Source: Amphiscolops sp. MND2022
Lineage: Eukaryota
DNA length: 64,000 nt
NCBI GenBank assembly: GCA_964187785.1
Contig: OZ076410.1
Span: 41,044,001 to 41,108,000 of the forward strand
Reading direction: 5' to 3'
A model generated the notes under the pieces. The model was not told the DNA's origin. It did no database searches and was given only the letters and a program-made list of their open reading frames with translations. A program made the position numbers and the translations under genes. This document shows positions 7,481 through 54,556 of the stretch, in pieces. Position 1 is the stretch's first letter. Each line of letters opens with the position of its first letter.

Positions 7481-7519
7481 CTTGACTGATTTCTTTTTAA
7501 CCGTAATCTTTTATTCAAC

Positions 7520-10455: not shown

Positions 10456-12367
10456 TGTCACAGCCCCGCCTGAGCTGCGAGCACTGCAACAAACACAACC
10501 CAGTCTTCGAAGAATAAATTGGGAAAAGAACAAAAGAAGAGGAAATAGACAACTGACAAACAATCAGAAACAAAGGAGGTAAACAATATAAATTTGAAGT
10601 AATTAAATAAATAAATATATGCATATTAGTGTTATTATCATAATAATGTACACTTATATAAATACGTACTTACGGAATAACGGAGCTACTCGTGCAGTTA
10701 ATAATAATACAATACTATGTAATAATAATAATTGAATTGCACCGCTCAGTGAATGAACCGAGAAATTAAAGGCGGAACTGAGGCCTGGCAGCCGGCCTCA
10801 AATACTCGCACTAAAGCGGCGGCCTGGCAGGCAGCCCGAGAATTGTAAACTCAGCGAACTAATATGCAAGTGCGCGCTATAGTGAATACATGTAAATGAA
10901 CTAATGTCTAGTGCAGTGATTTATTAACAATACGAGTGCAAATATACCAACAATTGAGATTTCTGTGCTAACATAATAGAACATCACGTACCGCGGCCTG
11001 GGATGCGGCCTGAGAATTACTTACGATAAATCAATCACGAAAGTGAAAGATGATGATGCTACCATGTAACTTTGTCTGGAAATGAATCTAGAGATTATTA
11101 TCTATGATCTTAAACTATATTGTCGTTTAAAATATCGCATATAACGTTCTTTTACATGTAAATATTAATTAATCTATAAACAGGCCTGAACCGCAGCCTG
11201 GACCAAAGATTTAGTACCGAATATCAAACCAAGTGTTAATAACATGTATATCCTGTTCCCTGAATCTGTTGTCGTTTAATTGCATTAAATACCTTTCTGA
11301 ACAAGGTATCTGATGCTGTTTATAATTAATAGTTGCTTTACCCATTGAACATGTTTGTCCGTCCCGGACTATGGCCTGGGACCAGGCTTCGTGATATTAA
11401 CCAAAATCAGAGCCGTAAAAACTGTAGAAGCAATTCTACTCTTTCATTTGAAACCTAATGTGTGATTTGTGTTAAATTTCATTCAAATTGTTGCTGATTT
11501 ATTTAATTTAGGGAAATATTTGTAAAGGAAAATTGGTTGTCATCATTTTTTCCCAAATTTGTGAAGTTAATCAATCTTATTCAGTGACTCATTGCGCGTA
11601 TCTTTGACAATTTTTTCAGTTCGGCGTCCTGAAGAGGCGGGAAATTGGAGGCGCAGGGAAGCGGAGTTGCAACTCAGGCCGGAAGTGGACGCGTGCTTTT
11701 CTATGGAAAGCATGAACAAGCTGAAAGCCTGAGTTCGACAAAGCGGAACTGAACTTCCTGTTTCCCTGCCTCGGACGGACGCCGGACTGAACAAAATGTG
11801 AAGTATGTTCGTGTCTTTTCCCCGATTTCCGGGATGGAAAGTATAAATACAATGCGAGCTAGAAGCCATTTTTAGTTGAATTTTGTTACCTTTGCGAAAC
11901 AATTGTTTTCCGTTTAACGATAATTAAAAATCTTGAAACATCACACTTTGTTACTTGAGAACTTGCTCTAATTTCCTTAAAAAGAGATCGAGAATCATCA
12001 AGCCTAAGTAAGATGCCAGAACGTAGCTCCAAAAGAAAAGCAAGAAGGGATTCCCCTGTAAACTCCTTAGACGAACCCGAATCTTCTAGCATGAGGACTG
12101 AAAACACTCCTAGTTTGTCAGATAAAGATTTTACGGAATTGTCTGAAAAGATAGAAAAATCTGTAAGTAAAAGAATCAAAGACACAGAAGTCGGACAGCG
12201 TGAGATTCTTAAGATGATAGAGAATCTGACCTCTAAAATTGATACTCTGGCAGAAAGACCGCGTAACAACGTGCGTCATGACTCCGATGATGAGGATGCA
12301 GAAAACATGGATTACAGAATTAGAACAGTTGAATCAAATGATTCACTCCCGAATCACGGTCAACACA
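10456..12367 (+). repeat. E1 5' LTR (1912 bp)
   Basis: TGTCACAGCC...GGTCAACACA; about 98-99% identical by eye to 28580-30476. Confidence 0.96.
11842..11878 (+). promoter_or_regulatory. E1 LTR core promoter: TATAAA plus TTAGTTG initiator-like motif
   Basis: AAAGTATAAATAC...TTAGTTGA has the same sequence and the same 32-nt TATA-to-A spacing in the E2 LTR (61567 to 61535). Confidence 0.7.
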
Positions 12368-13499
12368 TGGTGACAGGAGTTACCACAACCCAGGACATAC
12401 CCACCCGATCATCCAGCCTACCCCCGCCCAACATGAGATATCCAGACGATTTCGTGGACAAATTGCTCGAATCCCTGAAGAATGCCACACAACAGAGCGC
12501 GGGACTGCCCAGACTCCCGAAGGCACTCTCAACAACCATGCCCACATTTGATGGCCGCAATGACAAATTCGAGCACTTCGAGGACCTGTTTATGACGAGC
12601 CTCAAAGTATATCCAAATATCTCAGAGGAAGAGCAAATTCACTACTTCCACTCCCTCCTGAGAGGCGATGCCCTACAGACGTATCGCAATATGACAGACG
12701 CAAACCGCGCCAGTTTAGACGACATCATTACCACATTCCGAAGACGATACGTTCGCCCACAATCTATAGCCACCGCAAGATGTAAGTGGGAACAGCTTTA
12801 CTTCGACCCGACTCGCCAAACCTTCCAAGACTTCCTGGAGCAATACCAGAAATTGGCACAGGAGGCATATGGCGACGACGCCCCAAAGTTCATAGAAACC
12901 TCATTCTATGCAAAAATGCCAGCGCACTTAAAAGGAGTCCTTAACCAGGCATGACTCGAGACAGAGTCGTACGACCTGATGGTCCAGCACCTGGAACGCG
13001 AGATGGAGTTAAACGGACTCCTGGCCCCAAGCGAAACAAGTATAACAGGAGTACACCAAATCGATGTACAAGATGCCCCACAACAAACCGTCAATCCACC
13101 CAAACCAGCAGGCCCGTGTTTCGGATGTGGCAACCCAGGACATGTAATAAAGAACTGCCGGAAAACTGCTCGAGAAGCCCGCAACCGAGGCAACAGGGCA
13201 CCGACTAAGATAACAAACCCATGTGAAACCTGCGGCAAAAAGAGCCATACGACACAGGAATGTTATTCTGGCGCCAACTGGGCAAACAGACCCCAATGGT
13301 GGAAGACCCCTAAAGCAACTTCACCGAATAACATCCCGCTGCCACAGAATACACAAGGTCAGTACCCCCCAGACAACACACCAGTACATCAGCAGCCATA
13401 TAACAATCAAACAAATAGCCAAACGGGCTACCAACCCATGCTCCCGCAGACCAATCAACCTCAAAACCAAACCCACGAACTCAGCCAATCAAAAACTAA
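12013..13499 (+). pseudogene. gag: E1 gag (starts inside the LTR; in-frame TGA at 12952-12954)
   Basis: MPTFDGRNDKFEHFEDLF capsid-like region; two CCHC knuckles CFGCGNPGHVIKNC and CETCGKKSHTTQEC; colinear with the intact E2 gag. Confidence 0.92.
12368..12380 (+). promoter_or_regulatory. E1 primer-binding site TGGTGACAGGAGT
   Basis: Directly follows the LTR terminal CA; same sequence in E2 (13 nt) and E3 (12 nt). Confidence 0.9.
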
Positions 13500-16400
13500 A
13501 TATGCCACATCTTCGATTTGGGGAAACTGTCGAAACCCGACAGTACACAACATCCGAACCCCCAAATTCCTATGACCACGAAAGGAACACCGAGCGACAC
13601 GAAGAACCATCTCTCGACTGGCAGCGAAGATGGCAGATTCACAAGCTCCACAAATATAATCGCCAAAACACTGCAAAGAAAGACTACCCTCAGTGGTACC
13701 TTGACAACCCGACTGCTTACAATACTCTTAAACGACCCCTACCAGAAAACACTTCCCCTGAAACCTACTTCCACGACTCTGACTTCAACTGCGACCCATA
13801 CTATAACCCTCAACCGTATGACAAGACGACCCTAACGTTCAAACAGCAGGAATGCACGCCATTTGAAGAGTACATCAGAAAAACAGGGATGAATATTTCC
13901 ACCGAACCACGTCACAGGTCCAAAACCGTCCAACCTATCCCAGACTACAACCAGGACGCCGAACACGTGACAGAAATCCTAGTTGATATCTCACAGAACA
14001 ACGCCAAACCAATACTCAAGAAACAGGGATTCTATACCACGGCTCCCCATTCTCCACCAAAAGACCAGCCAATAAACCCTATCGTAGCCGGTATCATACG
14101 ATCCCCAACAATGGACGTGGCACCAGACAGCCACCAACATAGAAACCTCACCGACAGGACCACGATCGAAGCCGTGGACCTGGCCCCACCTACACCCAAT
14201 TCAAAGACCAACATCTCCAAACCAAAAACCAAACGAATCAAGAGATCTCTTCTCCTAGAACCCTCCGTTCAAAACGAGACACAGCTCTCACCCACTACCC
14301 TCAATAGTCAGCTAGAAGATGAAATCGACACCGATCGACACATCACAGCTGACGCAACCAACATTCAGTCTGAATTCCCATCAGGTGCTGCAAACGGCAC
14401 ACCGCAACAGGACGTTCCCAGGTCCTACCCCCCTGAGCAGACTGCAGAATATCTGAGGAACAACAAAAGTCCAGTCAGAGAAATCAACGTTGCCACCTCT
14501 CTCTCCAGTAGGCAGACCGAAAACGAAGTCGAGGACCCTCGACCCCTCAACCCGCAACTAATACACAATCTGGATCCCCCACCGGTGTTGTAAACGACAC
14601 ACCACCCCAGGACGAACCCCAGTCCTACCCCCTGGCCCAGATTGCGGAATACCTCACGAGAGACCCCATAACAAAAAAAGAGTGCATACCAATCTTTTCA
14701 GCAGTATCCCTCACAAAGAAGAAGAAAATGCTCTTCGCCCCCATGGACTTCCAGGACTTGACCCTGGACGCCCTTATTGACTCTGGCGCCCTTGTAAACT
14801 GCATCTCCGAAACCGATTACAAGAAAATCCTCCAAATGTCCCCCAAAGACATTGTTAAAGAATTGGAACCACCCCCTTTCAAACTCCAAGTCGCAAATGG
14901 CGACATTGAAACGCCCACCAAAACAATCATCCTCCAATTCGAAATCGGAGACTGGAATTTTAAGGAAACATTTATCGTGGCCAAACGACTGACAGGCCCA
15001 ATACTTGGCCTTACGTTCCTTAAAAATAACAGCGCCATCCTGGACGTGAGCCAGGGCCTGCTACATTTCCCCCACCTCACATATTCAATCGAAATCGATG
15101 AATATACCCGTAACAGGAAACTGTACAAAGTACAAATAAAGAATCCACTCACTATTCCCCCTGAAACGACACAAACAATAACAGGCTCCACAGATATACC
15201 ATCCAACGTCGACACAACCGGTGTCATCAACCCAGCCACCAACCACTGCAGTGGCGACCCCCTCGTGGTAGCCAGTTCAATCTCAACAGCCTCAAACCGA
15301 AAAATCGACATCAGAGTAACAAATACCACCCCTACACCCTATACCATCAAACGAAACACAACAATAGCAGAATTCAAAATCCTGTCCCCCGAAGAGGCAA
15401 AAGAACTCAAACCACTCAACACAGCAGCACTCAAAGTGCTCGCCGAAGACGACTCCGAAGATGCGATGGTGTACATCAACGAGCGCCTGAAAACCTCAGA
15501 AAAACCATCTCACAATCAAAACTTTTGGTTTCCTACACCAGACCACCCCGGAGACCCTGCTACCCACACCCCGATCCAGAGCCGAATTCTCCGAGAAATC
15601 AAAGAACTGGAAGAAATCCAGAAACTCGACCCAAACAACAGCGAAGAGGAACGAAAAACATTCCTCCAAAGCTTCAAATGGGACGATTCACAACTCTCCG
15701 AAGATGACAAGAAAGACATCGAAGAAATACTCATAGAGTTCAACGACATCTTTGCAAGACATCGACTGGACATTGGAATCAACCATGATTTCAAAATCAA
15801 ACTCACACCGAAAACAGACGACCCCGTCTACTCACAGAGTTTGCCCTGCCCCATTAACCTGAAAGGAGATCTGACGGTCGAATTGGCCCTAAAGCATTAC
15901 TTCGGGATTATAACCACGCTCCCGTTCAGCAAGTATGCCAGCCCATTTTCGCCCAAAGGAAGCCAAACGGCCGCCTGCGCCTACTAGTCGACCTCAGGAA
16001 AATCAACAATCTGATATCTGATGATTACATTAACAACAATCATCCAGTGAGCACACTAACAGACGCGGCGCAACACCTCGCCGGCAAGAAGTTGTTTTGC
16101 AAGCTTGATTGTTCACAAGCCTACCACGTGCTGCAAATGGCAGACCAGAAGTCCGTTCAACTTCTAGCATTCAACTTCGCCAGCAGGACATTCGCGTACC
16201 TCAGGCTAGCCCAAGGCCTGAGCCGCTCATTGTCGTCCTTTTCAAGTTTCATGAGGGAATACCTCGACAAGGCCATAAAGGCGGACAAATGCGCTCAGTA
16301 CGTGGATGACATTGGAATTGCCACCAACACTCCCGAGGAGTTAAAGAACAACTTGAGAGAGGTTTTCCAATGCATCCGCGCAGCAGGACTCCGGCTCTCC

Positions 16401-19226
16401 ATGGCCAAATGTCAGTTCGGCGCCAAGGAAGTCGAATTCCTTGGGCGAACAATTTCCCCAGCAGGGGTGGCACCCCAGAGCCACAAGATCCAGAAACACC
16501 TTCAGACCATCAAATTCCCCCGGACGAAGAAGGGACTTCAAAGATACATCGGCTTCGTAAATTACTACAGAAACTACATTCCCCGATTATCAGAGAAGAT
16601 TGCCCCATTTCATGAACTCATCAAATCAGACAAGCCAGTCAAGGTAGATCAGGAACTCATATCCAATTTTGAAGCTATCAACAAATCGTTAGACAACGCA
16701 TGCGGCCTTTGGCTCAAACAGCCACTGCCAAACCGGCAGTACGTACTAATGACAGACGCAAGCTTCAGGATTGCCGGATATGCCTTGATGACTGAGGAAG
16801 ACACGGAGCAAAAGATCACCTCCACCAGGAAGACTTACGCTCCAGTGGCATTTGGCTCTAAAACTTTTTCACCATCCCAGTTGAAGATGTCAATCTATGC
16901 CAAAGAATTCTTAGCCATCTATTTCGCTTTCATGGAATATAGTCACATCTTGTGGGGTTCATCCAAACCGACTATTGTCTTAACCGACAATAAATCAGTC
17001 ACCAGGTTTTTCCAAACCAAGATGATACCACCCTCCCTCTGGAATGCCTGCGATTTTGTTCTGCAATTTCACTTTAAAATCGCCCATGTGCCGGGAAGGA
17101 TGAATACAGCAGCTGATTTCCTCTCCCGATTAGACATTAGCCCCAAAGAAAAAGTCCTTCTCCAAATCAGAGAAGACATTCAAACAACGCCGATCCAGGT
17201 AAACATACAATCCTCCGACATCCATGAAGAAGATCAGTTCTATTTTTTACCAGAGGACGACACTGAGACCGAAGAAGACATTTGGGAGTGTAAACAACAA
17301 GCCAGGAAACAGATCTACACACCCCATGACCAGAACTCCGACCCCAAGAGTGAAACTGTCCAAACCATCTCCCAACCCGAGAACCTACCCTTGGTCTGCA
17401 ACAACATCCAAGACCCAGAGCAAGAACAGCGGCGCCAACTTCACAGTGACACAAGCTTCCCGCGCAGTCTGAGACCGTACCAAGACCAGGACCCCGTCCT
17501 CAGAAACCTCAAACTGAAAATCCTAAAAGAACCGTACGACACCCAACTTCTGAACGACGACCCCAGAGCGGCCAAATACCTCACACAAGATGACCGCATC
17601 ATCATAAAAGATGGACTCCTGTATCGACAATATTTTGGCGATACAGGGAAAGTCAAGTACTTGCAAGTACTACTCCCCCAGCAACTGGTTGATGAATTCA
17701 TACAACACCACCATGGCAAATTCGGGAAACATCCAGGTATAGCTAAAACCATCCAGCATTGCCGCGAAAAGTACTACTTCCCGGGGCTAGCCGCCCGAAT
17801 AGCCACCCACATTGCACAATGCCCAGAATGCGCTCAGACGAAAAGGATACCAAATGCAATGGGTCCAGAAGACGCACTACAAATGGACATCGTCCTCTTT
17901 GACGACCCTTCGGGAGGATACACTGCAGTCATCACAGCGATGGATGTATTCTCCCGTTATCTATTCGCGTATAGCGTCGCCAGAATCGACACCAAGACTG
18001 TCACACGGGTCCTTACAGATATCATCACAAAACACTGCTATCTCCCAACAACGATAATCACGGACAAAGGATCCCAGTTCATATCGGAGGCAATGCAACA
18101 AACAACAGCCATTCTCGGAATCCAACTGAAACATGCCACCACCAAACATGCCCAGACGATAGGCATCCTAGAAAGGACACACGCCTCGCTCAAAGAAAGC
18201 CTAAAAATCATGACGGGAGAGAGGCGAACGATGTGGCACCAATTCTTACCAATGGCAGTATTAAATTACAACACTTCCTACCACACATCATTAGGCTGCG
18301 AACCCAGCCGAGTTTTCCATGGAAGAGTGCCCTACAACGTACTCGACCTAAAGTACGGTCTTAAACCCCAGGCCACTGCCCCAACTAACCACGAAATAGC
18401 TGAGGGAGTGTTACAACAAACACAAGAAATCCTCAACCAGAGCCAACAAGCCCTGATGCAAGCCTACGTCCGACATAAGCGTTAGTATGACCGGAAAGCA
18501 TCAGCACACCCCTTGGTAGTAAACGACTACTGCTATGCTTTGCATCCAAAGGCGCATAGCCAAGCGACGAAATTGCCGTTTCGGGAATACCTTTGGACGG
18601 GACCATATATCGTGGTCGAAACCCTACCCAACAACAACTATCTGATACGCAAACTCCAGACCAATTTCACACAGATCCTGCACAGAATCAGGCTACGCCC
18701 CTTCGCAAGCAGCCACAAGCTGCCTGACATTACAGTCCCACCCAAGGATTTCCAGCAGGATACAGAGGTAGCCATACAGCACGACGACCTCTTCGCAATG
18801 GCGTGGGAAAAACTTTACAAAGAATGCCCTAACCAACCCGAAAATAAACAATTACCCGAACTTGAAGTGATCCAACCAACCCCAGAAACAATCAATGACC
18901 CCACCCACCCCGGCCCCCCAAGCCCTAACCTAGTATACGACCCCGAAATCATTTCTAACCACCCAAGTGACCAGACACAGGACCCACCAATCGATATCGA
19001 TGATGAACCCGAAAATAATACACCCGCACCTCAATCCCCCCGGAAATCCCACTACAACCTTCGAAAAAACCCGACGTCAAATTGGAAACCAGATTATGCC
19101 TATTACAATGCCCTAACAGCCAATTCAACAAACTTGGCATATTCTTCCGACGGACTGGACAACGGCCCAGAATTACAGGTTTTAGCGGACCTCGGCCCAG
19201 ACGGCAGTCCGAGATCAGAAAATTAA
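13490..19226 (+). pseudogene. pol: E1 pol (extra N-terminal domain - PR - RT - RH - IN), broken by frameshifts near 13495, 14550 and 15945 and a TAG at 18483
   Basis: LIDSGA (PR), QYVDD (RT), TDASF and AKEFLAI (RH), HHGKFGKHPG..CPEC, TDKGSQF and WTGPY (IN). Confidence 0.95.
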
Positions 19227-19571
19227 TCAGGCCCAGGCACTGGCCTGGACCACAATCCTATGACCTGACTTCAAATCTTTTCAAATTACAATGGCTTTCA
19301 CTCACTCTACTGTACTCTACGACTTGGATGAAAACAATACAGAGGCAAAATACTAAATTCACAGACCCACAAGGATCATGGAGCCGCCTCATCTTTTATT
19401 TTTTCCTCTAATTTTTCTTCTTTGCCCTACTCAGACAGAGAGCAATTTTAAAAATTACATTTGAAATGGAAAATGGAACCATAGAACGTTCTACAAAGAA
19501 AAACAGCCAACAATATACACAAGGCAGATAATACAAAGTTCATCAACAAGAAGCATATACAACAAAAGTTT

Positions 19572-22029
19572 TCAACCAGATTTGCCGGAACGACAAGGTT
19601 TCTTCCCACCAGGCTTCGACGAAGATACGGTCGCTGACACACCTTGACTAATATCTGAACCACCATGGGAACAGACATCAATAACTGCAGCAGGGCCAGA
19701 AACCATCCGAGAAGTCCTTTGGACCGAAGACATCCGAGCCCTCCACTCATCAACCTGCCCAGAATAGTAGGCAGTATAACACTGGAATAAACTGTTGTAA
19801 ACGTCTTCCACAGGATGACGATTTACATCAACCCAAGGATCAAACGAATCCCGAGCAAGAAAATGGTGACCAACGGGCAGGTTGATCTTCAATTCTTCCA
19901 CGCAATCCAAAGTTAGAAGATCCGATGACATAAACTTTGGGTGCAGAACAAAGGACTGAACGGCATAAAGACCGGACCGAATCACACTGGCTGGCAAGTT
20001 GGTCCCACTAACAGATATATCCACAGCCGGCATAACACTAGACACGGGACACACAATGACCCGTACAAGACGAACCACCTGTCGGACATGGGATCGGCAC
20101 TGGTAACTCCCAATGGTCTCTAAATATTCAAAAACGTCAGCAATCTGAGATGAATCCACCGACAACTGGCTCAAATCCACAACCAGCGATTTAAACTCAT
20201 TAACAGAGGACTCCCGATCCAGATCATCCAGATACCCAGTCTCTTGCAGACAAACAACGAGATCCTCAAACAGTCTGATGACATAATCAGCATCGCCCCC
20301 AACAACATATCCACACTGAGGCAGCTCAGAGAACGGGCAATACGAGAATTGGCATAGGCAGAAGAACTCAATTGCTTGAGAAGCTCCAATAAATAACTTT
20401 GACACTCCCGTAGAAAGGACCGACGCGGAGACTCCTCGAATCCTCGCAGAGCTTTCTGGATGCTCAGCTCACCTTGGAGACACTCACCCACGGGTACATT
20501 AGCCCAGCTATTGAGCGGCTTGTCAATGTAGTCGAACCAATCATCGACGGACGGCAGCTGACTCACCTTCTTGACTTTACTCAGCAAGCTCCAGTAAAAG
20601 AAGCAGAAGTCTGTGAAACTCCTACATGCATAATCCCGGACATTGGCGTCAAAGAACTTCTTACAGTTTGCACGAAAACACAACAGGACAACATGCAACA
20701 GTGCCAGTCGCGGAAGACCTAACCAATCTGAACACAGCAAGGAGTCCAAATCCACTACATTGGCAGACTTCTTCATCACAGACACGTCATTAGACAGACA
20801 CAGCTTCACATCTGCCCAATGGTCCAACAGCTCCTGCAACACCTCACAAAAGACACTGACAGGCACGTCACCGGACTCCAAACAGAGACGCAGTTGAGGC
20901 AATTCCAGCAACCACGCTTGCTGACAAACTCTCTTGAGACGCTGCACGAGGTACTCGATGGTGGCAAAAGGATCCACGGAGCCCACGCACGAAAAGCTAG
21001 CATCGTTCACGAGCCGGCGCAAAAGCTCGATACTGAAGGTCACGGAGACGAGGGGCACAGGACGCCTCACTAGCCGGCACCAATCAACATAAGCATTGAA
21101 GAGGACCGGAGAACAATTTTCAATTGCAACATGACCACGACGAGTAGAAACCAGTGACAGGACCCGGGACAGACAACGAATGTAGGCCTCAATTGAGACA
21201 GTGCCATAATCCTCTTCCACAATACAGATCTCGCGTACGGAATCACCAGAACAGCAGCGGACCGTACACTTCACCCCGGAGGATGAAGACTGCAAAGCCA
21301 AACTGGAAGAGCTGTCTCCTAGCCATGATTTCACACGCCGAAGAACACGAGGATATAAGGTCTGCACTAACACGACCACAGTCTCCGTCTTGCTCCACGT
21401 GACTGACGCATATGGGCTTTCCACAGGCAGAGTAGTTCGGAATTGATTCCACAAGCGGCGTAGAAAGGCCTGGGAACCACCGCTCCTTAGCAGCTCCAAC
21501 AAGCAACCGACGAGAGTAGTAGGAGGGACGTTGGACGGGACGCCAACCAACGCATCCACCTCATCCTCCAAGAACTTGTTCATTCGCCCCAGAACAACGG
21601 GGGGAGTCTTCTCAATCTCAGCCCGCAGGTCAGCCGAGATTTCTGCAACCGGAATGGCATCGAGTTTATCTGTATAAATAAAGTCCTCATGGTCATGCCG
21701 ATACCTCTGGTCCTTTGCTAGGTGCCCCTTGCATTTGAAATGACGCCATATACCACGGGGCCCTCGTGACAGAAATGAGACGTCCTTGCGGCAAATGGCA
21801 CAATTAAAACCATTCGGACTTTTATCATTGCGCCGGCTTACAAATAATCGAGGCACAGGATGGTTACTCATAGCCTTTGTCAGCACGTGTCGCTCAGTTT
21901 TCTTCTTGGTTTTTTCTTCGTCTCGAGCGAGCAGCTTCTCTTTCTTCAACTCAACTGGATCCAAGAAACGACCGGGATCACTAGCATCGATACCTTTAGA
22001 CTTCAGCAACTGCGACAGCTCCTCAAACT
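19572..22029 (-). pseudogene. duplicated orphan last exon of the E1 antisense gene, frameshifted (G6 to G5 near 20298)
   Basis: ORFs 20171-22051 and 19572-20405 together reproduce ORF 23993-26473. Confidence 0.9.
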
Positions 22030-22200
22030 CTAAAACAAGAAACAACAACAACTCATAAAATAAACTCTACACAACACCAACCCAGAATGTACAAGCACAG
22101 TATAAAGCAGAAAAGACCACAGAACAAACAGATGAAACAACCAATGTACCGCGGAAGGAAACGGAAAATACAAAACTACAACACCGAAAATTTACTAACG

Positions 22201-23992: not shown

Positions 23993-26900
23993 TCAACCAG
24001 ATTTGCCGGAACGACAAGGTTTCTTCCCACCAGGCTTCGATGAAGATACGGTCGCTGACACACCTTGACTAATATCTGAACCACCATGGGAACCGACATC
24101 AATAACTGCAGCAGGGCCAGAAACCATCCGAGAAGTCGTTTGGACCGAAGACATCCGAGCCCTCCACTCATCAACCTGCCCAGAATAGTAGGCAGTATAA
24201 CACTGGAGTAAACTGTTGTAAACGTCTTCCACAGGATGACGATTTACATCAACCCAAGGATCAAACGAATCCCGAGCAAGAAAATGGTGACCAACGGGCA
24301 GGTTGATCTTCAATTCTTCCACGCAATCCAAAGTTAGAAGATCCGATGACATAAACTTTGGGTGCAGAACAAAGGACTGAACGGCATAAAGACCGGACCG
24401 AATCACACTGGCTGGCAAGTTGGTCCCACTAACAGATATATCCACAGCCGGCATAACACTAGACACGGGGCACACAATGACCCGTACAAGACGAACCACC
24501 TGTCGGACATGGGATCGGCACTGGTAACTCCCAATGGTCTCTAAATATTCAAAAACGTCAGCAATCTGAGATGAATCCACCGACAACTGGCTCAAATCCA
24601 CAACCAGCGATTTAAACTCATTAACAGAGGACTCCCGATCCAGATCATCCAGATACCCAGTCTCTTGCAGACAAGCAACCAGATCCTCAAACAGTCTGAT
24701 GACATAATCAGCATCGCCCCCCAACAACATATCCACACTGAGGCAGCTCAGAGAACGGGCAATACGAGAATTGGCATAGGCAGGAGAACTCAATTGCTTG
24801 AGAAGCTCCAATAAATAACTTTGACACTCCCGTAGAAAGGACCGACGCGGAGACTCCTCGAATCCTCGCAGAGCTTTCTGGATGCTCAGCTCACCTTGGA
24901 GACACTCACCCACGGGTACATTAGCCCAGCTATTGAGCGGCTTGTCAATGTAGTCGAACCAATCATCGACGGACGGCAGCTGACTCACCTTCTTGACTTT
25001 ACTCAGCAAGCTCCAGTAAAAGAAGCAGAAGTCTGTGAAACTCCTACATGCATAATCCCGGACATTGGCGTCAAAGAACTTCTTACAGTTTGCACGAAAA
25101 CACAACAGGACAACATGCAACAGTGCCAGTCGCGGAAGACCTAACCAATCTGAACACAGCAAGGAGTCCAAATCCACTACATTGGCAGACTTCTTCATCA
25201 CAGACACGTCATTAGACAGACACAGCTTCACATCTGCCCAATGGTCCAACAGCTCCTGCAACACCTCACAAAAGACACTGACAGGCACGTCACCGGACTC
25301 CAAACAGAGACGCAGTTGAGGCAATTCCAGCAACCACGCTTGCTGACAAACTCTCTTGAGACGCTGCACGAGGTACTCGATGGTGGCAAAAGGATCCACG
25401 GAGCCCACGCACGAAAAGCTAGCATCGTTCACGAGCCGGCGCAAAAGCTCGATACTGAAGGTCACGGAGACGAGGGGCACAGGACGCCTCACTAGCCGGC
25501 ACCAATCAACATAAGCATTGAAGAGGACCGGAGAACAATTTTCAATTGCAACAGGACCACGACGAGTAGAAACCAGTGACAGGACCCGGGACAGACAACG
25601 AATGTAGGCCTCAATTGAGACAGTTCCATAATCCTCTTCCACAATACAGATCTCGCGTACGGAATCACCAGAACAGCAGCGGACCGTACACTTCACCCCG
25701 GAGGATGAAGACTGCAAAGCCAAACTGAAAGAGCTGTCTCCTAGCCATGATTTCACACGCCGAAGAACACGAGGATATAAGGTCTGCACTAACACGACCA
25801 CAGTCTCCGTCTTGCTCCACGTGACTGACGCATATGGGCTTTCCACAGGCAGAGTAGTTCTGAATTGATTCCACAAGCGGCGTAGAAAGGCCTGGGAACC
25901 ACCGCTCCTTAGCAGCTCCAACAAGCAACCGACGAGAGTAGTAGGAGGGACGTTGGACGGGACGCCAACCAACGCATCCACCTCATCCTCCAAGAACTTG
26001 TTCATTCTCCCCAGAACAACGGGGGGAGTCTTCTCAATCTCAGCCTGCAGGTCAGCCGAGATTTCTGCAACCGGAATGGCATCGAGTTTATCTGTATAAA
26101 TAAAGTCCTCATGGTCAAGCCGATACCTCTGGTCCTTTGCTAGGTGCCCCTTGCATTTGAAATGACGCCATATACCACGGGGCCCTCGTGACAGAAATGA
26201 GACGTCCTTGCGGCAAATGGCACAATTAAAACCATTCGGACTTTTATCATTGCGCCGGCTTACAAATAATCGAGGCACAGGATGGTTACTCATAGCCTTT
26301 GTCAGCACGTGTCGCTCAGTTTTCTTCTCGGTTTTTTCTTCGTCTCGAGCGAGCAGCTTCTCTTTCTTCAACTCAACTGGATCCAAGAAACGACCGGGAT
26401 CACTAGCATCGATACCTTTAGACTTCAGCAACTGCGACAGCTCCTCAAACTCTAAAACAAGAAACAACAACAACTCATAAAATAAACTCTACACAACACC
26501 AACCCAGAATGTACAAGCACAGTATAAAGCAGAAAAGACCACAGAACAAACAGATGAAACAACCAATGTACCGCGGAAGGAAACGGAAAATACAAAACTA
26601 CAACACCGAAAATTTACTAACGCTTAGCTAGCGACTCAGTCTCTTTCATGGTCTCAGTCCTTTCCGCCCGAGCAGCACTCCGAGCCAACAGCAAACATTG
26701 CGCTGCAGTCATCACCACAGGAGACTCAGGCGGTACGGCAGGCAAACCAACTGAAACAACACCTGTTTACCATACCGAAGTATTACACTCTTCGCGATAC
26801 TGCTAACACGACAACAGTGCAGGACACAATAATGACGCAAGAACATGAAACACCAAAAATGAAAAGAGCGAGGAAAGCAAACGTGCAAAACTATACCTTT

Positions 26901-27833
26901 GTCCCTGTCATTGTAGACCACTGACGCCTCGGTACCAAGGGCCGTCCGTCCGTGCTGAGTTCGGGTATGACGAAATAACCCCGCAGGAATCGTCGATGTG
27001 GCATCACTCTCTTGGGCAGGAGTGTCTTGTGCAGCCTCACATACAAAAACGTCGCTGCCGCCAGAAGACCCCAATCCAGGCTCAGAATCTAGTCCAGCGA
27101 CTATAAAACATGATGTAGATGTATATCACAAAGAGTATTGAAATTAACCCCCAAGCTACTCTCAACCAAAGTACACCGACAGCAACAAGAAAGATGGAGG
27201 TATACCTACTTTCAAGAGTCTTGGAGGCAGAAATCGTTGGAGGATCAATTTCCTCACCAGAACTGTCCACAGGTGAACGGGGCTTAGACACCGACCCCGG
27301 CAGAAGACTCGCCAGTCGGACTCGTTTCGTAGACCGGACACTACTGGTCGACAACTTTTGACTCGACCGCGATTTCTTCTTCGACGACTGTAACTCGGCA
27401 GTCGGACTGTAATCCTTATCAAGATTGTCATCAGTAGCTAAGAAAGTAGATGGAAAAAGAACGCGTTCACAACCAACTAGAAAGGGCCGGCCACCCATTT
27501 AATTTCTAGAGAAGACTTACCTTTCTTGCTCGCCAAATAATCTATATCGTGCCGATCGTCGCTGGTAGCTGAGTGAAAGGAGACAGTTTCAGCACAACTC
27601 CCATCTTCCACCTCGGGGTCCTTGTCAGAGCTATCTTTCTCGCCAAATCCATGTTGTCCGGCCCCAGCGATAACAGAAGTGACCTCAACATTCTCGTTTT
27701 CGACAGCAACAACTACACGCCCTTCTCCCTGCACAACTGACTCCACAACTGACTCTACCTCAGCCTCACTATCTTTCAACGCGACTTCCTGACTACGACG
27801 TAACAAGACACCATCCTCTTCTGTCGAACTCAT
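23993..27833 (-). CDS. E1 antisense 5-exon gene, about 1110 aa, acidic N-terminus + BED-like Zn finger + hAT-like body; exons 27833-27521, 27437-27210, 27100-26897, 26750-26622, 26451-23993
   Basis: Four GT-AG introns (83, 109, 146, 170 nt), all phase 1. Spliced CDS is 3333 nt with no internal stop. Every exon is homologous to the E2 counterpart. Confidence 0.85.
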
Positions 27834-28056: not shown

Positions 28057-28641
28057 ATGAATCATCCAAATTCAAACAGCAAAATGGACGAAGACGTCTT
28101 CATTCTCGAACGAGATCAACAGCAGCAGACCGAACAAAGATCCGGTACACCGCCACCAGATTATAACCTAATTACCACGCGGCAAATTAACATTACTTAC
28201 GAAATCATTAAAACACAGGACTACCACGTAGTCCTAGTACATGAAGAAACGCCGGCCGATACTACGAACACAGAAAGCGAGACGGGAGTCATCAGACGTT
28301 TCACGCAAGACAACCCAGTGATCCCCGAAGACACATTTGTGAGCCCGGTCAGGCAATTCGACCGTGAAATTTACGATGATCCCGACAACAAAGTTGATAG
28401 CCCAATAAGTTTCTACAGTAGATCAGAAGGCTACTATTCGGGCAGCGATTGGGAGACAGACTCATCTTGGCGATCCTACAATTCATTAACTGACGATCTC
28501 CCAACGCTATTTGAGACCCCGATTCGATCAATTTCCCAATTTCTCCTTCCTGAGGGAACTGGGTACAGAAGCCGAGGACTGTCACAGCCCCGCCTGAGCT
28601 GCGAGCACTGCAACAAACACAACCCAGTCTTCGAAGAATAA
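28057..28641 (+). CDS. E1 ORF-X, 194 aa unknown protein running through the PPT into the 3' LTR
   Basis: ATG-initiated; shares FILxRDQ, YEII, NPxIPxDxFxSP, GYxSGSDWxTDSSW and SRGLSQP with the E2 ORF-X. Confidence 0.8.
   Translation: MNHPNSNSKMDEDVFILERDQQQQTEQRSGTPPPDYNLITTRQINITYEIIKTQDYHVVLVHEETPADTTNTESETGVIRRFTQDNPVIPEDTFVSPVRQFDREIYDDPDNKVDSPISFYSRSEGYYSGSDWETDSSWRSYNSLTDDLPTLFETPIRSISQFLLPEGTGYRSRGLSQPRLSCEHCNKHNPVFEE
28567..28579 (+). promoter_or_regulatory. E1 imperfect polypurine tract
   Basis: AGAAGCCGAGGAC directly before the 3' LTR TGTCA; E2 has AAAGCCGGGGAC. Confidence 0.6.
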
Positions 28642-30476
28642 ATTGGGAAAAGAACAAAAGAAGAGGAAATAGACAACTGACAAACAATCAGAAACAAAGG
28701 AGGTAAACAATATTAATTTGAAGTAATTAAATAAATAAATATATGCATATTAGTGTTATTATCATAATAATGTACACTTATATAAATACGTACTTACGGA
28801 ATAACGGAGCTACTCGTGCAGTTAATAATAATACAATACTATGTGATAATAATAATTGAATTGCACCGCTCAGTGAATGAACCGAGAAATTGAAGGCGGA
28901 ACTGAGGCCTGGCTCGGACTAAAGCGGCGGCCTGGCAGGCAGCCTGAGAATTGTAAACTCAGCGAACTAATATGCAAGTGCGCGCTATAGTGAATACATG
29001 TAAATGAACTAATGTCTAGTGCAGTGATTTATTAACAATACGAGTGCAAATATACCAACAATTGAGATTTCTGTGCTAACTTATTAGAACATCACGTACC
29101 GCGGCCTGGGATGCGGCCTGAGAATTACTTACGATAAATCAATCACGAAAGTGAAAGATGATGATGCTACCATGTAACTTTGTCTCGAAATGAATCTAGA
29201 GATTATTATCTATGATCCTAAACTATATTGTCGTTTAAAATATCGCATATAACGTTCTTTTACATGTAAATATTAATTAATCTATAAACAGGCCTGAACC
29301 GCAGCCTGGACCAAAGATTTAGTACCGAATATTAAACCAAGTGTTAATAACATGTATATCCTGTTCCCTGAATCTGTTGTCGTTTAATTGCATTAAATAC
29401 CTTTCTGAACAATGTATCTGATGCTGTTTATAATTAATAGTTGCTTTACCCATTGAACAAGTTTGTCCGTCCCGGACTATGGCCTGGGACCAGGCTTCGT
29501 GATATTAACCAAAATCAGAGCCGTAAATACTGTAGAAGCAATTCAACTCTTTCATTTAAAACCTAAAGTGTGATTTGTGTTAAATTTCATTCAAATTGTT
29601 GCTGATTTATTTAATTTAGGGAAATATTTGTAAAGGAAAATTGGTTGTCATCATTTTTTTCCCAAATTTGTGCAGTTAATCAATCTTATTCAGTGACTCA
29701 TTGCGCGTATCTTTGACAATTTTTTCAGTTCGGCGTCCTGAAGAGGCGGGAAATTGGAGGCGAAGGGAAGCGGAGTCGCAACTCAGGCCGGAAGTGGACG
29801 CGTGCTTTTCTCCGGAAAGCATGAACAAGCTGAAAGCCTGAGTTCGACAAAGCGGAACTGAACTTCCTGTTTCCCTGCCTCGGACGGACGCCGGACTGAA
29901 CAAAATGTGAAGTATGTTCGTGTCTTTTCCCCGATTTCCGGGATGGAAAGTATAAATACAATGCGAGCTAGAAGCCATTTTTAGTTGAATTTTGTTACCT
30001 TTGCGAAACAATTGTTTTCCGTTTAACGATAATTAAAAATCTTGAAACATCACACTTTGTTACTTGAGAACTTGCTCTAATTTCCTTAAAAAGAGATCGA
30101 GAATCATCAAGCCTAAGTAAGATGCCAGAACGTAGCTCCAAAAGAAAAGCAAGAAGGGATTCCCCTGTAAACTCCTTAGACGAACCCGAATCTTCTAGCA
30201 TGAGGACTGAAAACACTCCTAGTTTGTCAGATAAAGATTTTACGGAATTGTCTGAAAAGATAGAAAAATCTGTAAGTAAAAGAATCAAAGACACAGAAGT
30301 CGGACAGCGTGAGATTCTTAAGATGATAGAGAATCTGACCTCTAAAATTGATACTCTGGCAGAAAGACCGCCTAACAACGTGCGTCATGACTCCGATGAT
30401 GAGGATGCAGGAAACATGGATTACAGATTTAGAACAGTTGAATCAAGTGATTCACTCCCGAATCACGGTCAACACA
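28580..30476 (+). repeat. E1 3' LTR (1897 bp)
   Basis: Copy of 10456-12367 with a roughly 15-bp deletion and a few dozen substitutions. Confidence 0.96.
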
Positions 30477-39249: not shown

Positions 39250-42200
39250 CTCACTAGCCGGTATATCGCAAAAATAGGCCAACTTCAGCTTGACCAGCAG
39301 CCCAACATATCCTACGCCCAGCAGATGTTGAAACAGAAGACCAACGAGATGTTGAACTGACACCGACCACAGGAGTTCCTTTCAAGTTCTTGAAAGCAGT
39401 TGTGAGATTTTTCAAAAATGTATCCCGTCCGACAACGTCCACTTGAGCACAAGGATCGCCAGCACGTTGTCCGGAAATAAACTGCACATCCAACGGCTTT
39501 TATCTAGCCAAAGCTGGTTCTGTGGTACAAACGGAAACTGCACATGGGCAATCAGACAAATAGGACTGTGCAGGCATTACCACTGCAGAAAGGCGGCAAC
39601 TGGAACTGGAAGTATCTACGTCTTGATATTTAACACCCGGAAGGGCGTGATGTTCCTCAGTTATACAGAGGCAGAAGAGTCTGAACAAATAAAACAACGT
39701 TGGTCGGGTACGAGAGGCAGGTATGGGGATAAGAAAATCCATTACATCAGTGATGGTTCCTGAGGAAGTCTTGATGGAGGAAGAAGCATTACGAAAATGA
39801 TCAATGCAATGAACTCGAAGTATTCGTCTTGACATTCGTCCTTGGAAGATTCATCCACCCAACCGTGAAGTCCGAAACTGTCAAACAAGGCATTGAAACA
39901 GAAATGTTAGCAGTACGTGAGGGTCAAAACAACCCATCCCATGTACAATGTTAGCGGTGAAGTGGATATTGCGAAGCAGAGAGTCCAACAAGTTGACGAC
40001 GTATCCACGAGCCTCTGTCTCAAAGTTTCTTTTTTCTTTTGCAACCAGATCGTCCATATTGACAGGTGCAATTTTTGCTGCCTGTGTCCGCTTCAGTTCG
40101 GCCTGACATGCTAGGTCGAGGTCGGACGTTAGTTTCAGCTGGTTTAATAAGTCGCGACTTGACAATTGCCTCAAATCATCAGGGCACAGATGGAGAAGAT
40201 CAGTCCAATCCGCATCATCTGGAATACATTTGGGCTATATGGCGCGGTGACACAATCGGCGAACAACCCTACAATATTGCTCACAGATAAACAGGTTGCA
40301 TCACGTCGCCCAGAAAAACTGCGTTCGAAACACTTGGTGTCTGAACAAGTAGAAAGTTAAAACGGAATCACTATAATCATTGGTCTAAGCTAAACCATAG
40401 CAAGTCTCATTCGTTGTTAAGTTCACTATCGGCAAATGAGATATCAGGTCAATTACAATGTTAATTCGGACGTGTGTAAAGAGAACAATCTCGGACTAGT
40501 AGAGAGGTAAATTCGAGTTCAATGGTGAAAAATTCGTCCTGGATGATGACCCACTCCAGACTCTGGAGCTGAAAAAGAAAACCACCTGATAGGAAAAGGT
40601 TAGAACTAGGTGCATGATGATACAATAAAACAAAGGACCAACTAGGCTCAAAATCCAATCAAGCAGAGTTTTGTATAACCACCTTGTTCTTGACTCCCTG
40701 CATCACTTGAGTTGGAGCAATTTCGGTAAGATAGTCCTTGATAGCCTTCCAGTTCTTAACGAGTTCCGCGCATATGGTTTGGAGTTTCTTCAACTCCATA
40801 TCACAAGCTACAATGGCGTATAAAAAAGGAACAATCAAGAGGAGGAGTACCAATCTGACTTTACGGATGCAACCAAAAATTGCATGACAGTGTTGAGGAC
40901 CAAAAGGGAATGCACAGTCGAAAGAGGAAAAGGAAAAGCATAATCAGAAGGTAAATAACCTTGCAAAGCCCAGGACACTGTAAGACCCACGGCTGGCTAG
41001 GACCGCCTCGAAAGAAGACATCCAAGAACTTGAGTTGCGAGAAGATGTCAATCCGACCGAAGACGTACCTTGTCTGCAAAGCTCCTGGGTGCATCAGTTC
41101 AGGGAGGGATAAAACCTCGAATCGGAACGGGTATTGTATTCCATGATCGAATAGTCCGCAAGTTTCTAAAGCTCTAAAGATCATGGAGGAACAGCCAGAG
41201 ATGCCGACGAGATTAGGTTTTGAGGACACAAACGATAACAAACACGAAATCGCTGTCGATAACATCCTGGATATGAGTCAGCCTGATGGTGTCGATGTAA
41301 CTCCTCTCGGACTAGCCAGTCACTTTTCCAGAATCGGACCGACATGTATCGGAAGACCCCATGTGTGGTGAACTCAATCGAATACATCTCTGTAGCCATG
41401 ATATGACTGGAAATGTCAGCGAGGCATGAAAATGTGATGGAACACTTTTCAGAACAAAGCGATCAGGTATGAAAGAAACATCTTGTCAAAAGACCAGAAT
41501 AGGGTTAGTTATGAGAATCACAAATTAAAAGATTACCTACTGTGAGAGTGACTGATCCCCAACCGATTGAGGAGAACAAAGCTTGATGGTTGGTGAATAC
41601 TCCAACTTGGGGCCACAAGCTCTGCAGTAAAGAAATATTGCCATCGTTTGGTATGAAAGTGCCAATTATGGAGATCAGGGTACTGGTCCGCAGGTCACCA
41701 GGATTGGTAATTCCCCTGATGCTGGCCATATAGTCATCGTAAAAGGGGAATCGGTCGCCTGTCTCAACTAGAGGGACGTCAATGAAGGAAGGCTTTCCGT
41801 TTCTAGTTCAATCGGCGTTAGGACATAACCGTACTTCCCTCTAACTTGATGGGTGGTGACCCGCGTCACGTCGTCAGTTTCCTGCAAGTGTATATATCGC
41901 CACTTTTCATCCTTTCGAAGATGCCCTTCAGTCTTGTTATGTCTCCATAATTCTCTTGCGCCTTCAGAGTAAATGGAGACATTACTTTTGCATATCATGC
42001 AATAGAACTTGAACTTGTTGTGGATGGGGTCTACGGGGCCGGACACAAAGTTACGAGTCCATTGAATGCCTTTAAAATAAGCGTCTTTCATCACCTTCCT
42101 GTGGTTTGCTGAGTTGTCTTCGCCTTTTACGGGGACGACTTCTAACCGGAGTTTCCACCTCTGGCAGACGTCCAAATACTGGGAGAGGCGGTTGGTCGTT

Positions 42201-47364: not shown

Positions 47365-49416
47365 TGTTGGAACTCTCGTTCCTAGATAAACCAACTTCTT
47401 CTAGTTCTTCAGTGGGGTTTCCACTGTTCTCAGTCCTGGTCGTCAAGTAACCTTGTTCAGAATTGACGCTTGATAAGTTATCGACTTTGGACGATAGACT
47501 CTCAATCAATTTTAATATCTCGCGTTGGTTGAGTTCAGTGTCTCTGAGACGCTTAGAAATTTTATTCTCAATTTTATTGGATATGTCTTCAAAATCCCTT
47601 TCCGAAAGTACGGCGTTTTCGTCGTTGATCGAGCTTGCCGTCTCTATGTCGAACTGGCTGGTCGACTGGTCACTCCTCAACTTTCGTTTTTGAGATTTCT
47701 CAGGCATCTTGTAAAATAGTGGAGAGACAATATTTCAATTAAACTTGAGTCGTTACAAACGTAATGGAGACTTCAGTTCAGTGAATTGTCAGAGTTTTCG
47801 AAACAAAAGAATTATATTAAGCAAAGGTAATTAAAACAATTATTACAAAGGCAAAATTTCCGGAGAACGGTTAATCAAACGCACTTGGAAAAATCAAATT
47901 ATCAACTAACTTTTCCTAATCCCGCTTCAGGTATTTATACTTTACGCTAGACACACGGGGAAAACCCCGCGCGTGAATTCACACCTTGTTCACCTCGGCG
48001 TCCTTTCCAAAGCGGGGAAATCCAAATAAGGTATTCTTCCTCGGGACTCGGCGTTCGGTTCCAACCCACTTTAAAGAAAAGTGGGAATTCACTTCCTGCC
48101 GCTTCCCGATTCCGCGTCCCTTTCTTCTTCATTTCCCGCCTTTTCAAGACGCCGAAGGTGAAGTTGGCACTGAAATTCATGAACCTAGCTACTGAAGCGG
48201 GAAAAGGAAATGAATTTTCCTTTAAATAAAATAAGCAATTCAACATAAGAGAAAACTGCACTAATTTGTGAGTTGACAAAATTAGGGGTGATGATCACAA
48301 CTATCGACGCACTTTCACAAATTTAACATTAAACACGTGCCTGGTCGACGGACATAATACTCAAACGAGGTCAAACAACCAGGCTAACAGCCCAAATTAA
48401 TGCATGTGAAAAGGGGGGCAAGATTATTCAGTTAGGTAGCATCTGGGAGTAATTTCCATTCGGTCAACAAATATGGTATGTCGGACGATTGTCACTATCA
48501 TAACGTATTAATATTTCACTCAAATTTGATACATCATTAATTAATCAAACGGTTGTCCAGGCGGGAGTCCCAGCTCATACTAATATTATTCATCATTTCG
48601 CTTCGCTTGAATGATTTGTAACCTTCCATGTATAATTAAGATAGCACATTTACATGTATCAAGGCAGTTATTCATTATCTATTGGTGTTTTGGTTCTTTA
48701 CTGCTCCATCTAAGTTGGGCTGATTGTCCCGGCGGTCGTCCCAGTTTATAAATATAGACCGGTTGTCCCAGCGGTCGTCCCAGAACTCATGGTTGACAAA
48801 TTAACAATTGTACTTTGGTATATTATAAATATTACATATTCCAACTCTATTACTTAAAACTGCATATTTTAAGCTTCTTCTAAGCTCTGAATTTGAGTTT
48901 ATTTCACATTTAGCGTCGTTTGAGTACACTAGCATTTCAGATAATTCAGTCGAGCAGCCAGGCGTGCGTCCCAGCTTTGTCGACTGAATTGCTTGGCTAG
49001 CAGAGTAACTGAATTAATACTGCACATTCGCGCTTAGCGCTGATTGGTTAATTAAAGGGGCAGTGAGAATTAGTGTGTTTTGCTACGCAGATATTGGGAC
49101 GGTAGGCTGGTCAGTGCGCTGGTTGGAATAACTTCAATCAGCGTATTGGTCAAGCTACTGCAAACAAATCACATTTACAACAAGTTATTATTATTTAATT
49201 ATTTACATATTTATGTATTTCAGGTACTGCAGGGGGTTGATGATATTAATATTATGCACTTACAGGGTTGTTCAATATCAATGAGTGTTTGTTTGTTGAT
49301 TGTTTTCTTTCAGGTTTGTGATGGTTTATTAGCTTCTTCTTGGTTAATTTCTCCATTTCTTTCCTCTGGCGTTCTCTCTGTTCTTATTATTTCACGGCCC
49401 TGTGGCGGCTGTGACA
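47365..49416 (-). repeat. E2 3' LTR (2052 bp)
   Basis: TGTCACAGCC...TTCCAACA on the minus strand; near-identical to 60993-63044. Confidence 0.97.
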
Positions 49417-49960: not shown

Positions 49961-50239
49961 TTGATTCGATGAGTAGATAAATTGTATGCAATAAATAGTA
50001 ATAGTTGTAAGCAATGCTGAGCGGCTGTTCTGCGGAATGGTCGAGTAATTGAATGATAATTCCGTTCTTTTCTTCTGTTCACGTCGCTTGCATGAATGGG
50101 AAAGTTTTCAGCTGGCAGACTGAATGACTTCCATTACGTCATACTATTAGTTTGTAATATTAGTATTAGCGTTGGTTTTACGCCACGTCTTCGACTTTTG
50201 GTATCAGGTTTGAGTTTATTTCAGATTTGAGTGTTTATT

Positions 50240-54223: not shown

Positions 54224-54556
54224 GTCGTGTGTTCGGCTTGTTGCAGACATACTTGATCAGATTTTAGTCTTTGTTTGTATTAGCAGTTTATATTTTATAG
54301 CTGATTATTGTGTATTTTGTTTCTGGCCCACGTGGTCTGATTGTGTTGTATTTGGCAAGAAAAGAAAATTGCATCGCCATTCTTAGAAAATGAGAGAAAA
54401 GGAGGGATGTCAGTTGGGGGGTTTTCAATAATTCACTCTTCTGCTCCTCGAATTCGTTTTCTGTTGAGTTTGTAGATGAGTAGTAGGGATTTGAGTCAGT
54501 TTCAGGTCAATTGAGTGAGTAGTAGGTGTACCATTTCATGAATTCATATTGAAAGT

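Follow-up and report, generated by a model that had tools for sequence, protein, structure and literature searches.

A predicted five-exon antisense gene with a transposase-like product carried by Ty3/gypsy retrotransposons of Amphiscolops sp.

Introns placed in reverse orientation within a retroelement are invisible to the splicing of its genomic RNA, and the antisense-intron retrotransposition reporters (the his3AI and neo-AI cassettes) were built on this principle. The HBZ gene of HTLV-1 is an antisense protein gene whose main mRNA is spliced, and its single intron is preserved since the genomic RNA contains it in antisense. Transcription of HBZ begins in the 3' long terminal repeat (LTR), and the product is a small bZIP protein. 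Here, we analyzed a stretch of 64,000 nucleotides (nt) from Amphiscolops sp. MND2022 (contig OZ076410.1, positions 41,044,001 to 41,108,000; hereafter the window, to which position numbers refer unless another locus is named), in which an intron-containing gene lies backwards inside two LTR retrotransposons, E1 and E2. We conclude that a Ty3/gypsy lineage probably carries a genuine antisense accessory gene, located between pol and the 3' LTR, made of five exons, encoding a product of about 1100–1180 amino acids (aa), and whose introns survive by standing in antisense.

Several elements with comparable genes have been described. In plants, the Ty3/gypsy elements Tat, Retand, Grande, and RIRE2 carry antisense open reading frames (ORFs), named aORF-3R, between pol and the 3' LTR, and these mostly encode TRP28 proteins (PMC7264820, PMC11963269). 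The orf23 of Grande has its own promoter, and the plant antisense proteins have been proposed to be DNA-binding or regulatory (PMC7264820, PMC11963269). The main texts of both papers contain no intron-exon model, the word "intron" being absent from them, and antisense retroviral genes are mentioned in one (PMC11963269). In TART, a telomeric non-LTR retrotransposon of Drosophila, multiple short introns present only in the antisense orientation are kept through retrotransposition, and the spliced antisense RNAs contain no significant ORF according to the authors (PMC1636488).

The gene reported here resembles the plant antisense ORFs in being an extra gene antisense to gag-pol and located between pol and the 3' LTR. 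It differs from them by its hAT-like predicted fold, with no TRP28/Transposase_28 (PF04195) match, by its four conserved introns and product of about 1100 aa, and by the DUF1759-type gag of the element. With HBZ it shares the status of a protein-coding antisense gene with introns (whose splicing is predicted here) in a reverse-transcribing element, but it has four introns instead of one, a large transposase-like protein and probably an internal promoter, because another ORF, ORF3, lies between the gene and the LTR. In contrast with TART, the element is of the LTR type, and the exons code for a protein that is strongly conserved. The his3AI and neo-AI reporters follow the same principle, but they are engineered, whereas the present case is natural and evolutionarily old. 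An antisense accessory gene of an LTR retrotransposon is already known as a kind; the cassette exchange, ORF3, and the intron-1 repeat are new observations of this analysis. In the literature covered, which leaves outside most subscription journals and Repbase Reports, neither a multi-exon antisense gene of hAT-like type in gypsy elements nor its exchange as a cassette was described.

A preliminary description of the window had joined short ORF fragments of E1 and E2 through four GT-AG introns, all in phase 1. Recomputed, the joined exons give coding sequences (CDSs) without stops, 1110 codons long in E1 (minus strand, 27833..23993) and 1176 codons long in E2 (plus strand, 50240-54223). Each of the four introns per model begins with GT, ends with a pyrimidine-rich tract and AG, and is in phase 1; the exon peptides quoted at the time are present in both models. 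The introns measure 83–170 nt. Exons 1 to 4 of both E1 and E2 are placed by the splice model together with the multi-copy alignment. In transcriptional order, the gene reads as follows.

27521..27833, minus strand: E1 exon 1, ATG at 27833
27438..27520, minus strand: E1 intron 1, 83 nt, GTAAGT..TTAG, hyperconserved
27210..27437, minus strand: E1 exon 2
27101..27209, minus strand: E1 intron 2, 109 nt
26897..27100, minus strand: E1 exon 3
26751..26896, minus strand: E1 intron 3, 146 nt, precisely missing in loci L003 and L004
26622..26750, minus strand: E1 exon 4
26452..26621, minus strand: E1 intron 4, 170 nt, GTTAGT..TTTTAG
23993..26451, minus strand: E1 exon 5, zinc finger and hAT-transposase-like core, stop included
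50240..50675, plus strand: E2 exon 1
50676..50765, plus strand: E2 intron 1, 90 nt
50766..50930, plus strand: E2 exon 2
50931..51028, plus strand: E2 intron 2, 98 nt
51029..51232, plus strand: E2 exon 3
51233..51344, plus strand: E2 intron 3, 112 nt
51345..51470, plus strand: E2 exon 4
51471..51623, plus strand: E2 intron 4, 153 nt
51624..54223, plus strand: E2 exon 5, zinc finger and hAT-like core

Such an open model is weak evidence when taken alone, because dozens of alternative GT-AG chains are likewise open: a permissive enumeration gives 36 of them in E2 and 60 in E1, mostly differing at introns 2 and 3. Comparison across copies was therefore used as support. A search with the exon-5 protein returned 36 clusters with 44–99% identity and hundreds of member sequences, and an exhaustive profile search returned 832 representatives at E<=1e-3, mostly fragments. 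All the homologues found, of the antisense protein as well as of pol, come from ENA assemblies, and a scan of JGI metagenomes with the family profile returned no relatives. Ten related loci (L001–L010) were retrieved from two ENA samples. A large ORF convergent with a gypsy pol is present in nine of them, the tenth, L004, being a 4-kb contig that ends before pol; all six loci that were compared with themselves are complete elements, with LTR pairs 98.0–99.8% identical. The seven-copy comparison comprises E1, E2, L001, L002, L005, L006, and L007, the antisense-gene cores of which are 47–78% identical at the aa level. L008 represents a distant lineage (28–31% aa identity) with the antisense gene at the same place.

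In multiple alignments of the seven copies, built in two groups (E2, L006, L005, and L002 on one side; E1, L001, and L007 on the other), the GT donors align at all four positions and nearly all the AG acceptors do. Transferring the junctions over these alignments gives open five-exon models, in phase 1 throughout and 1099–1176 aa long, in seven copies out of seven. Choosing the junctions by an E1–E2 alignment score was tried and discarded as unreliable in the low-complexity exons 2 and 3. The reading frame is restored solely by intron removal and the GT-AG ends stand at homologous positions, as expected for spliceosomal introns. The start, MS(H)STDED or MSSTEED, is kept in all the copies with exon 1 recovered.

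The pattern of divergence points in the same direction. Synonymous divergence (dS) is saturated between lineages (above 1), and the ratio of nonsynonymous to synonymous divergence (dN/dS) is 0.12–0.35 for exons 1–4 together and 0.04–0.11 for exon 5 where computable; each exon taken alone also lies below 1 (0.04–0.5). Gap lengths are a multiple of three for 70 of 94 gaps in exons vs. 23 of 89 in introns. Over the nine within-group pairs, the mean identities of exons 1 to 5 are 0.52, 0.50, 0.54, 0.68, and 0.64, and those of introns 2 to 4 are 0.44, 0.43, and 0.42. The comparison of exon with intron conservation proposed in the preliminary description was thus carried out, and it favors the exons over introns 2–4, as do the gaps in multiples of three. 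The accompanying claim that the introns keep their positions while their sequence diverges stands for introns 2–4 (0.42–0.44 against 0.50–0.68 for the exons) and fails for intron 1, which is, with a mean of 0.76, the most conserved segment of all.

Natural variation in intron content was also found. L003 and L004, which come from the second sample, are devoid of intron 3 and retain intron 4, and their genomic sequence matches the predicted spliced exon 3–4 junction nucleotide for nucleotide (L003 around 299–345, L004 around 742–790). Conversely, the part of L008 that corresponds to exon 5 of E1 and E2 contains an extra intron of 120 nt (GTAAGT..TTTTAG, 9000–9119) and at least one further interruption (9700–10030). 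The intron content therefore varies among element lineages. These comparisons of sequence show the five-exon structure of the antisense gene, its conservation, and the selection on it; the gene would be transcribed and its four spliceosomal introns spliced.

The preliminary description had reasoned that introns normally do not survive an RNA intermediate and that antisense introns, not being spliced from the genomic RNA, could do so. This logic is supported by the location of the gene within complete LTR elements, and by L010. At this locus, a member of the E2 subfamily has inserted independently: it is 98.4% identical to E2 across 15,680 nt from LTR to LTR, its flanks differ from those of E2, and its own target duplication reads GTATT. 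All four introns are kept there, as is an open spliced CDS of 1176 aa. The introns have therefore passed through at least one retrotransposition cycle. Being reverse-complemented in the genomic RNA of the element, they go unrecognized when this RNA is made and reach each new insertion with it. Splicing would take them out solely of a separate antisense mRNA, starting from a putative internal promoter in the approximately 280 nt between the gene and the divergent ORF3.

We next consider the encoded protein. Its N-terminal part (exons 1–3) is acidic, serine-rich, fast-evolving, and probably disordered, and the exon 4 part is well conserved. Exon 5 begins with a C-x2-C-x16-H-x5-H zinc finger (C76, C79, H96, H102), invariant in an alignment of 15 sequences (A1), which contains many other invariant residues besides the zinc ligands. 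A Pfam scan gave no match at E<=10 for any of the 15 members, zf-BED and the hAT dimerisation domain included, and a sequence-profile search of the PDB gave nothing meaningful. The AlphaFold2 model computed from A1 (predicted local distance difference test score, pLDDT, 73.5; predicted template modeling score, pTM, 0.64) contains, in this order, three strands, one helix, one strand, and one helix, and then a long region that is all-alpha. When it was compared with the PDB by Foldseek, the top 12 matches were all the Hermes hAT transposase (E 2e-4 to 3e-3, probability 1.00), with target-normalized TM scores of 0.46–0.59, against about 0.1 for all the other matches. The model thus suggests, for the exon-5 core, a hAT-type RNase H-like fold with a large all-alpha insertion.

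The catalytic residues of a hAT transposase are not apparent in this core, in which positions were matched through the predicted secondary structure instead of a superposition. From residue 216 to residue 341 (predicted beta1 to beta4), none of the alignment columns of the 15 sequences is entirely D/E; beta1 has an invariant S242, and after beta4 L309 and N311 are invariant, with F310 in 14 of the 15 sequences. An invariant QS (Q693/S694) occupies the presumed place of the catalytic glutamate, on the basis of the hAT motif and not of an alignment. The conserved DDE triad of a hAT transposase was not found. The protein is, according to this model, probably hAT-derived and non-catalytic. It would most likely bind DNA and multimerize without catalysis, like the domesticated ZBED genes, with which, as with Hermes, it shares a Cys2-His2 finger of BED-like spacing, a predicted RNase H-like core with alpha insertion, and an apparent loss of catalytic carboxylates. 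It differs from ZBED proteins in being present in hundreds of copies on a retrotransposon and not as a host gene, and in having no zf-BED or hAT dimerisation sequence match. No terminal inverted repeats span the ends of the cassette, where a hAT element would have them together with an 8-bp target duplication; the block is therefore not a recognizable nested hAT element.

The gene is exchanged between element backbones. E2, L005, and L002 share 95–97% nt identity in gag-pol, and their antisense genes only 58–61% (57–63% aa, dS saturated), whereas the closest pair by antisense gene, E2 and L006 (core 78% identical in aa), reaches just 70% identity in pol. The pol tree and the antisense-protein tree conflict, and approximately unbiased (AU) tests reject each other's clades with p = 2.6e-6 and 1.4e-5; the effect is very large, although the groups were picked after the identity matrices had been viewed. 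The block in which E2 and L005 diverge starts some 60 nt upstream of the antisense ATG and ends about 100 nt short of the stop codon of pol. A second swapped block lies in the LTR (about 48200-48900), where E2 and L005 are about 32–53% identical, with LTR sequence on either side mostly about 90–98% identical; this is presumably U3 regulatory sequence.

50180..54450, plus strand: block exchanged between E2 and L005, approximate breakpoints, gag-pol about 97% identical

Diverged genes on near-identical backbones, together with the tree conflict, mean that the gene behaves as an exchangeable module. The exchange would be most simply explained by template switching between co-packaged RNAs of different families.

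From the antisense ATG to the 3' LTR, the sequence is highly conserved owing to ORF3, which it encodes on the sense strand. This Ser/Pro-rich ORF of 175–236 aa extends into the LTR, is present in all eight elements aligned (L008 included), has no Pfam match, and evolves with a dN/dS of 0.15–0.25. The interval between its start codon and that of the antisense gene is, we infer, an internal bidirectional promoter.

28057..28641, plus strand: E1 ORF3, 194 aa, enters the 3' LTR
49313..50014, minus strand: E2 ORF3, arranged head-to-head with the antisense gene, with a conserved Met near 49960
7821-8417 in L001, 7730-8365 in L002, 7701-8348 in L005, all minus strand: ORF3
7720-8352 in L006, 4228-4755 in L007, 6064-6774 in L008, all minus strand: ORF3
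49961..50239, no strand assigned: candidate internal bidirectional promoter, about 280 nt between divergent start codons

Intron 1 deserves separate treatment. Its identity reaches 0.89 where the flanking exons show 0.50–0.55. It contains an inverted repeat with a near-invariant 7-nt center, TGGCC(A/G)G, and arms that vary in a compensatory manner (GTTAG/CTAAC, GTTAA/TTAAC, GTTAT/ATAAC, GGG/CCC, AGG/CCT). In a small sample of related sequences, the same from which the structure was derived, 82% of the inverted-repeat cells are paired vs. 56% in shuffles (0 of 500 reach 82%), and slid controls are much lower. A second palindrome has no spacer, and its lineage variants (GACGCGTC, GAACGCGTTC, and CGACCGGTCG) are all palindromic.

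50695-50711, plus strand: E2 intron 1 inverted repeat, GTTAG-TGGCCAG-CTAAC
about 27484-27496, minus strand: E1 intron 1 inverted repeat, loop TGGCCGG
50730-50737, plus strand: E2 intron 1 palindrome, GACGCGTC
27459-27468, minus strand: E1 intron 1 palindrome, GAACGCGTTC

We looked for these palindromes as repeated binding sites and abandoned this idea: GACGCGTC and GAACGCGTTC each occur once in the window, and not as LTR repeats. A stable RNA or mirtron-like structure was likewise rejected. Indeed, the RNA stability of intron 1 on either strand does not differ from that of shuffles (z −0.9 to +0.6), RNAalifold predicts no structure on the whole intron 1 alignment, and the covariation is confined to the short inverted repeat. 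Intron 1 could act as an intronic enhancer, be bound by the encoded protein, or supply a signal to the sense genomic RNA, e.g., for dimerisation through the loop palindrome.

The host elements are as follows. Self-comparison together with ORF and domain scans reveals three LTR retrotransposons, nested or adjacent, in the window (E1, E2, and E3). By their structure, E1 and E2 are complete gypsy-type elements (Ty3/gypsy, Metaviridae), with LTR termini TG..CA, 5-bp target duplications, and a common primer-binding site beginning TGGTGACAGGAG; in both, the antisense gene occupies the interval from pol to the 3' LTR and runs opposite to gag-pol. The Pfam domains of the E2 pol (gag-asp_proteas 298-392, RVT_1 703-867, RT_RNaseH 960-1067, Integrase_H2C2 1273-1329, rve 1349-1441) follow the gypsy order, i.e., protease, reverse transcriptase, RNase H, integrase. 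E3 is an older element, tied to the family solely through weak matches of the E2 protein, since the L008 proteins gave no match in it at E<=1e-3.

10456..12367, plus strand: E1 5' LTR, element on the plus strand
28580..30476, plus strand: E1 3' LTR, 97.8% identity with the E1 5' LTR
10451-10455 and 30477-30481: E1 target-site duplication, CTATC
12013..19226, plus strand: E1 gag-pol, degraded, split into five ORFs
17821..22200, repeated at 22202-26622: E1 internal duplication, 99.2% identical (about 4.4 kb)
47365..49416, minus strand: E2 3' LTR, element on the minus strand, target duplication CTAAC
60993..63044, minus strand: E2 5' LTR, 99.9% identity with the E2 3' LTR
54560..59833, minus strand: E2 pol, intact ORF of 1758 aa with protease, reverse transcriptase, RNase H, and integrase
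59923..60992, minus strand: E2 gag, DUF1759 and Retrotrans_gag matches, putative start codon, listed ORF reaching 61335 within the LTR
31396-32352 and 44968-45947: E3 LTRs, 88.6% identical, degraded gag-pol on the plus strand
41607..42055, minus strand: weak remnant in E3 of a homologous antisense gene, weak matches with the E2 protein

The first copy of the E1 duplication holds a copy of intron 4 and a copy of exon 5 (19572-22051) with a 1-nt frameshift (20295 vs. 24717). The duplication junction falls at most 1 nt from the intron-4 donor of the antisense gene, a coincidence unlikely by chance (roughly estimated at about 0.002 when all eight splice junctions are considered). One may speculate that the duplication arose by reverse transcriptase run-off on an antisense RNA cleaved at the 5' splice site, followed by a template switch; if so, it would be an indirect sign that the intron-4 donor is used. 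In L009, an ENA assembly represents the genomic locus of E2 itself (L009 2508-21706 vs. window 47065-63344, 99.8% identical with the flanks included), but window 50337-53258, a part of the antisense gene, is duplicated in tandem there. The two versions would be structural variants in the population or differing haplotypes. Scans of the window against Rfam and for tRNAs found nothing, and positions 1-10454 contain only short ORFs, of at most 125 aa.

Other explanations of the antisense gene have to be weighed. It could be a passenger, i.e., a host or hAT-derived gene transduced once in antisense and without any role in the life cycle of the element, as LTR retrotransposons are generally known to capture genes and as the protein is unrelated to gag or pol. 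We consider this unlikely: neutral cargo in a fast-turnover element is expected to decay, yet the gene has a dN/dS of 0.04–0.35 with dS saturated between lineages, and all the lineages examined have it intact in their young insertions (identity of the LTR pairs 98.0–99.9% in E2 and six loci, 97.8% in E1). Moreover, its position is constant and its exchange involves the unit as an intact whole. A nested hAT DNA transposon, inserted in a gypsy element and then co-amplified while staying outside the gene set of the retroelement, would fit with the hAT-transposase-like fold. We give this reading the least weight of all, since the block has no flanking terminal inverted repeats and the first two catalytic positions have no conserved acidic residue. 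The position and orientation of the gene are also unchanged among lineages with just about 65–70% nt identity in pol, and the distant L008 has it at the same place. An ancient origin of the gene from a hAT element is, for its part, likely.

The antisense transcript itself could be the functional product, as a regulatory or silencing-related RNA of the kind proposed for TART, the coding capacity of exons 1–4 being incidental. TART antisense transcripts do have multiple introns without a long ORF (PMC1636488), and intron 1 of the present gene is better conserved than its exons. This is very improbable in view of the codon-level purifying selection, the indels in multiples of three, the many invariant residues including the zinc ligands, and the confident folded model. 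We give slightly less credence still to the absence of splicing, where only the exon-5 ORF would be translated and the upstream exons conserved for other reasons. The many alternative open GT-AG chains would allow it, but every small exon has a dN/dS below 1 in the predicted frame, GT and AG are kept at homologous sites, L003 and L004 fuse exons 3 and 4 in frame at the predicted junction, and the start peptide recurs wherever exon 1 was recovered.

Several observations weigh against the spliced antisense gene that we favor. Its intron 2 and 3 boundaries lie in a low-complexity stretch and are ambiguous in any single sequence, and the acceptors recovered at intron 4 of L005 and L007 are weak. 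Six of the seven copies have no AATAAA or ATTAAA within 600 nt past the antisense stop (E2: 54224-54823), and six of seven have no TATA box; the 3' end of the putative antisense mRNA may lie inside the antisense of pol. The protein collection searched contained no protein of the spliced length (about 1100–1180 aa). With no Pfam match, the hAT relationship comes from one predicted structure, and the function of the gene for the element is deduced solely from the selection pattern. Most likely, this function would be that of a regulator or tethering factor aiding the propagation of the element itself, and the protein possibly acts on the inverted-repeat motifs in its own intron 1.

A more elaborate scheme is conceivable, which we put forward only tentatively and regard as doubtful. 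The elements would form a complex gypsy lineage with two accessory genes on an internal bidirectional promoter. The antisense gene would be an exchangeable specificity module (gag-pol about 97%, alleles about 60%, recombination at the borders), and the intron 1 hairpin with its loop palindrome either a cis element for the sense genomic RNA (dimerisation or co-packaging) or a binding site of the encoded protein. If this were true, a dimerisation or co-packaging signal in intron 1 would also account for the rampant recombination, and a retroelement would be using introns as coding-free space for signals of the opposite strand.

Replication through RNA should leave retroelements poor in introns, and a natural four-intron gene carried backwards shows that multi-intron cargo is possible. 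This old and successful family would be the natural counterpart of the engineered antisense-intron reporters. One class of transposon has apparently recruited the former enzyme of another as an accessory factor. By combining cassette exchange with the presence or absence of introns, the family offers a tractable system for studying recombination between co-packaged RNAs, as well as intron gain and loss without the constraints of a host gene. It also bears on what accessory genes do for retrotransposons, a question shared with the antisense ORFs of plants.

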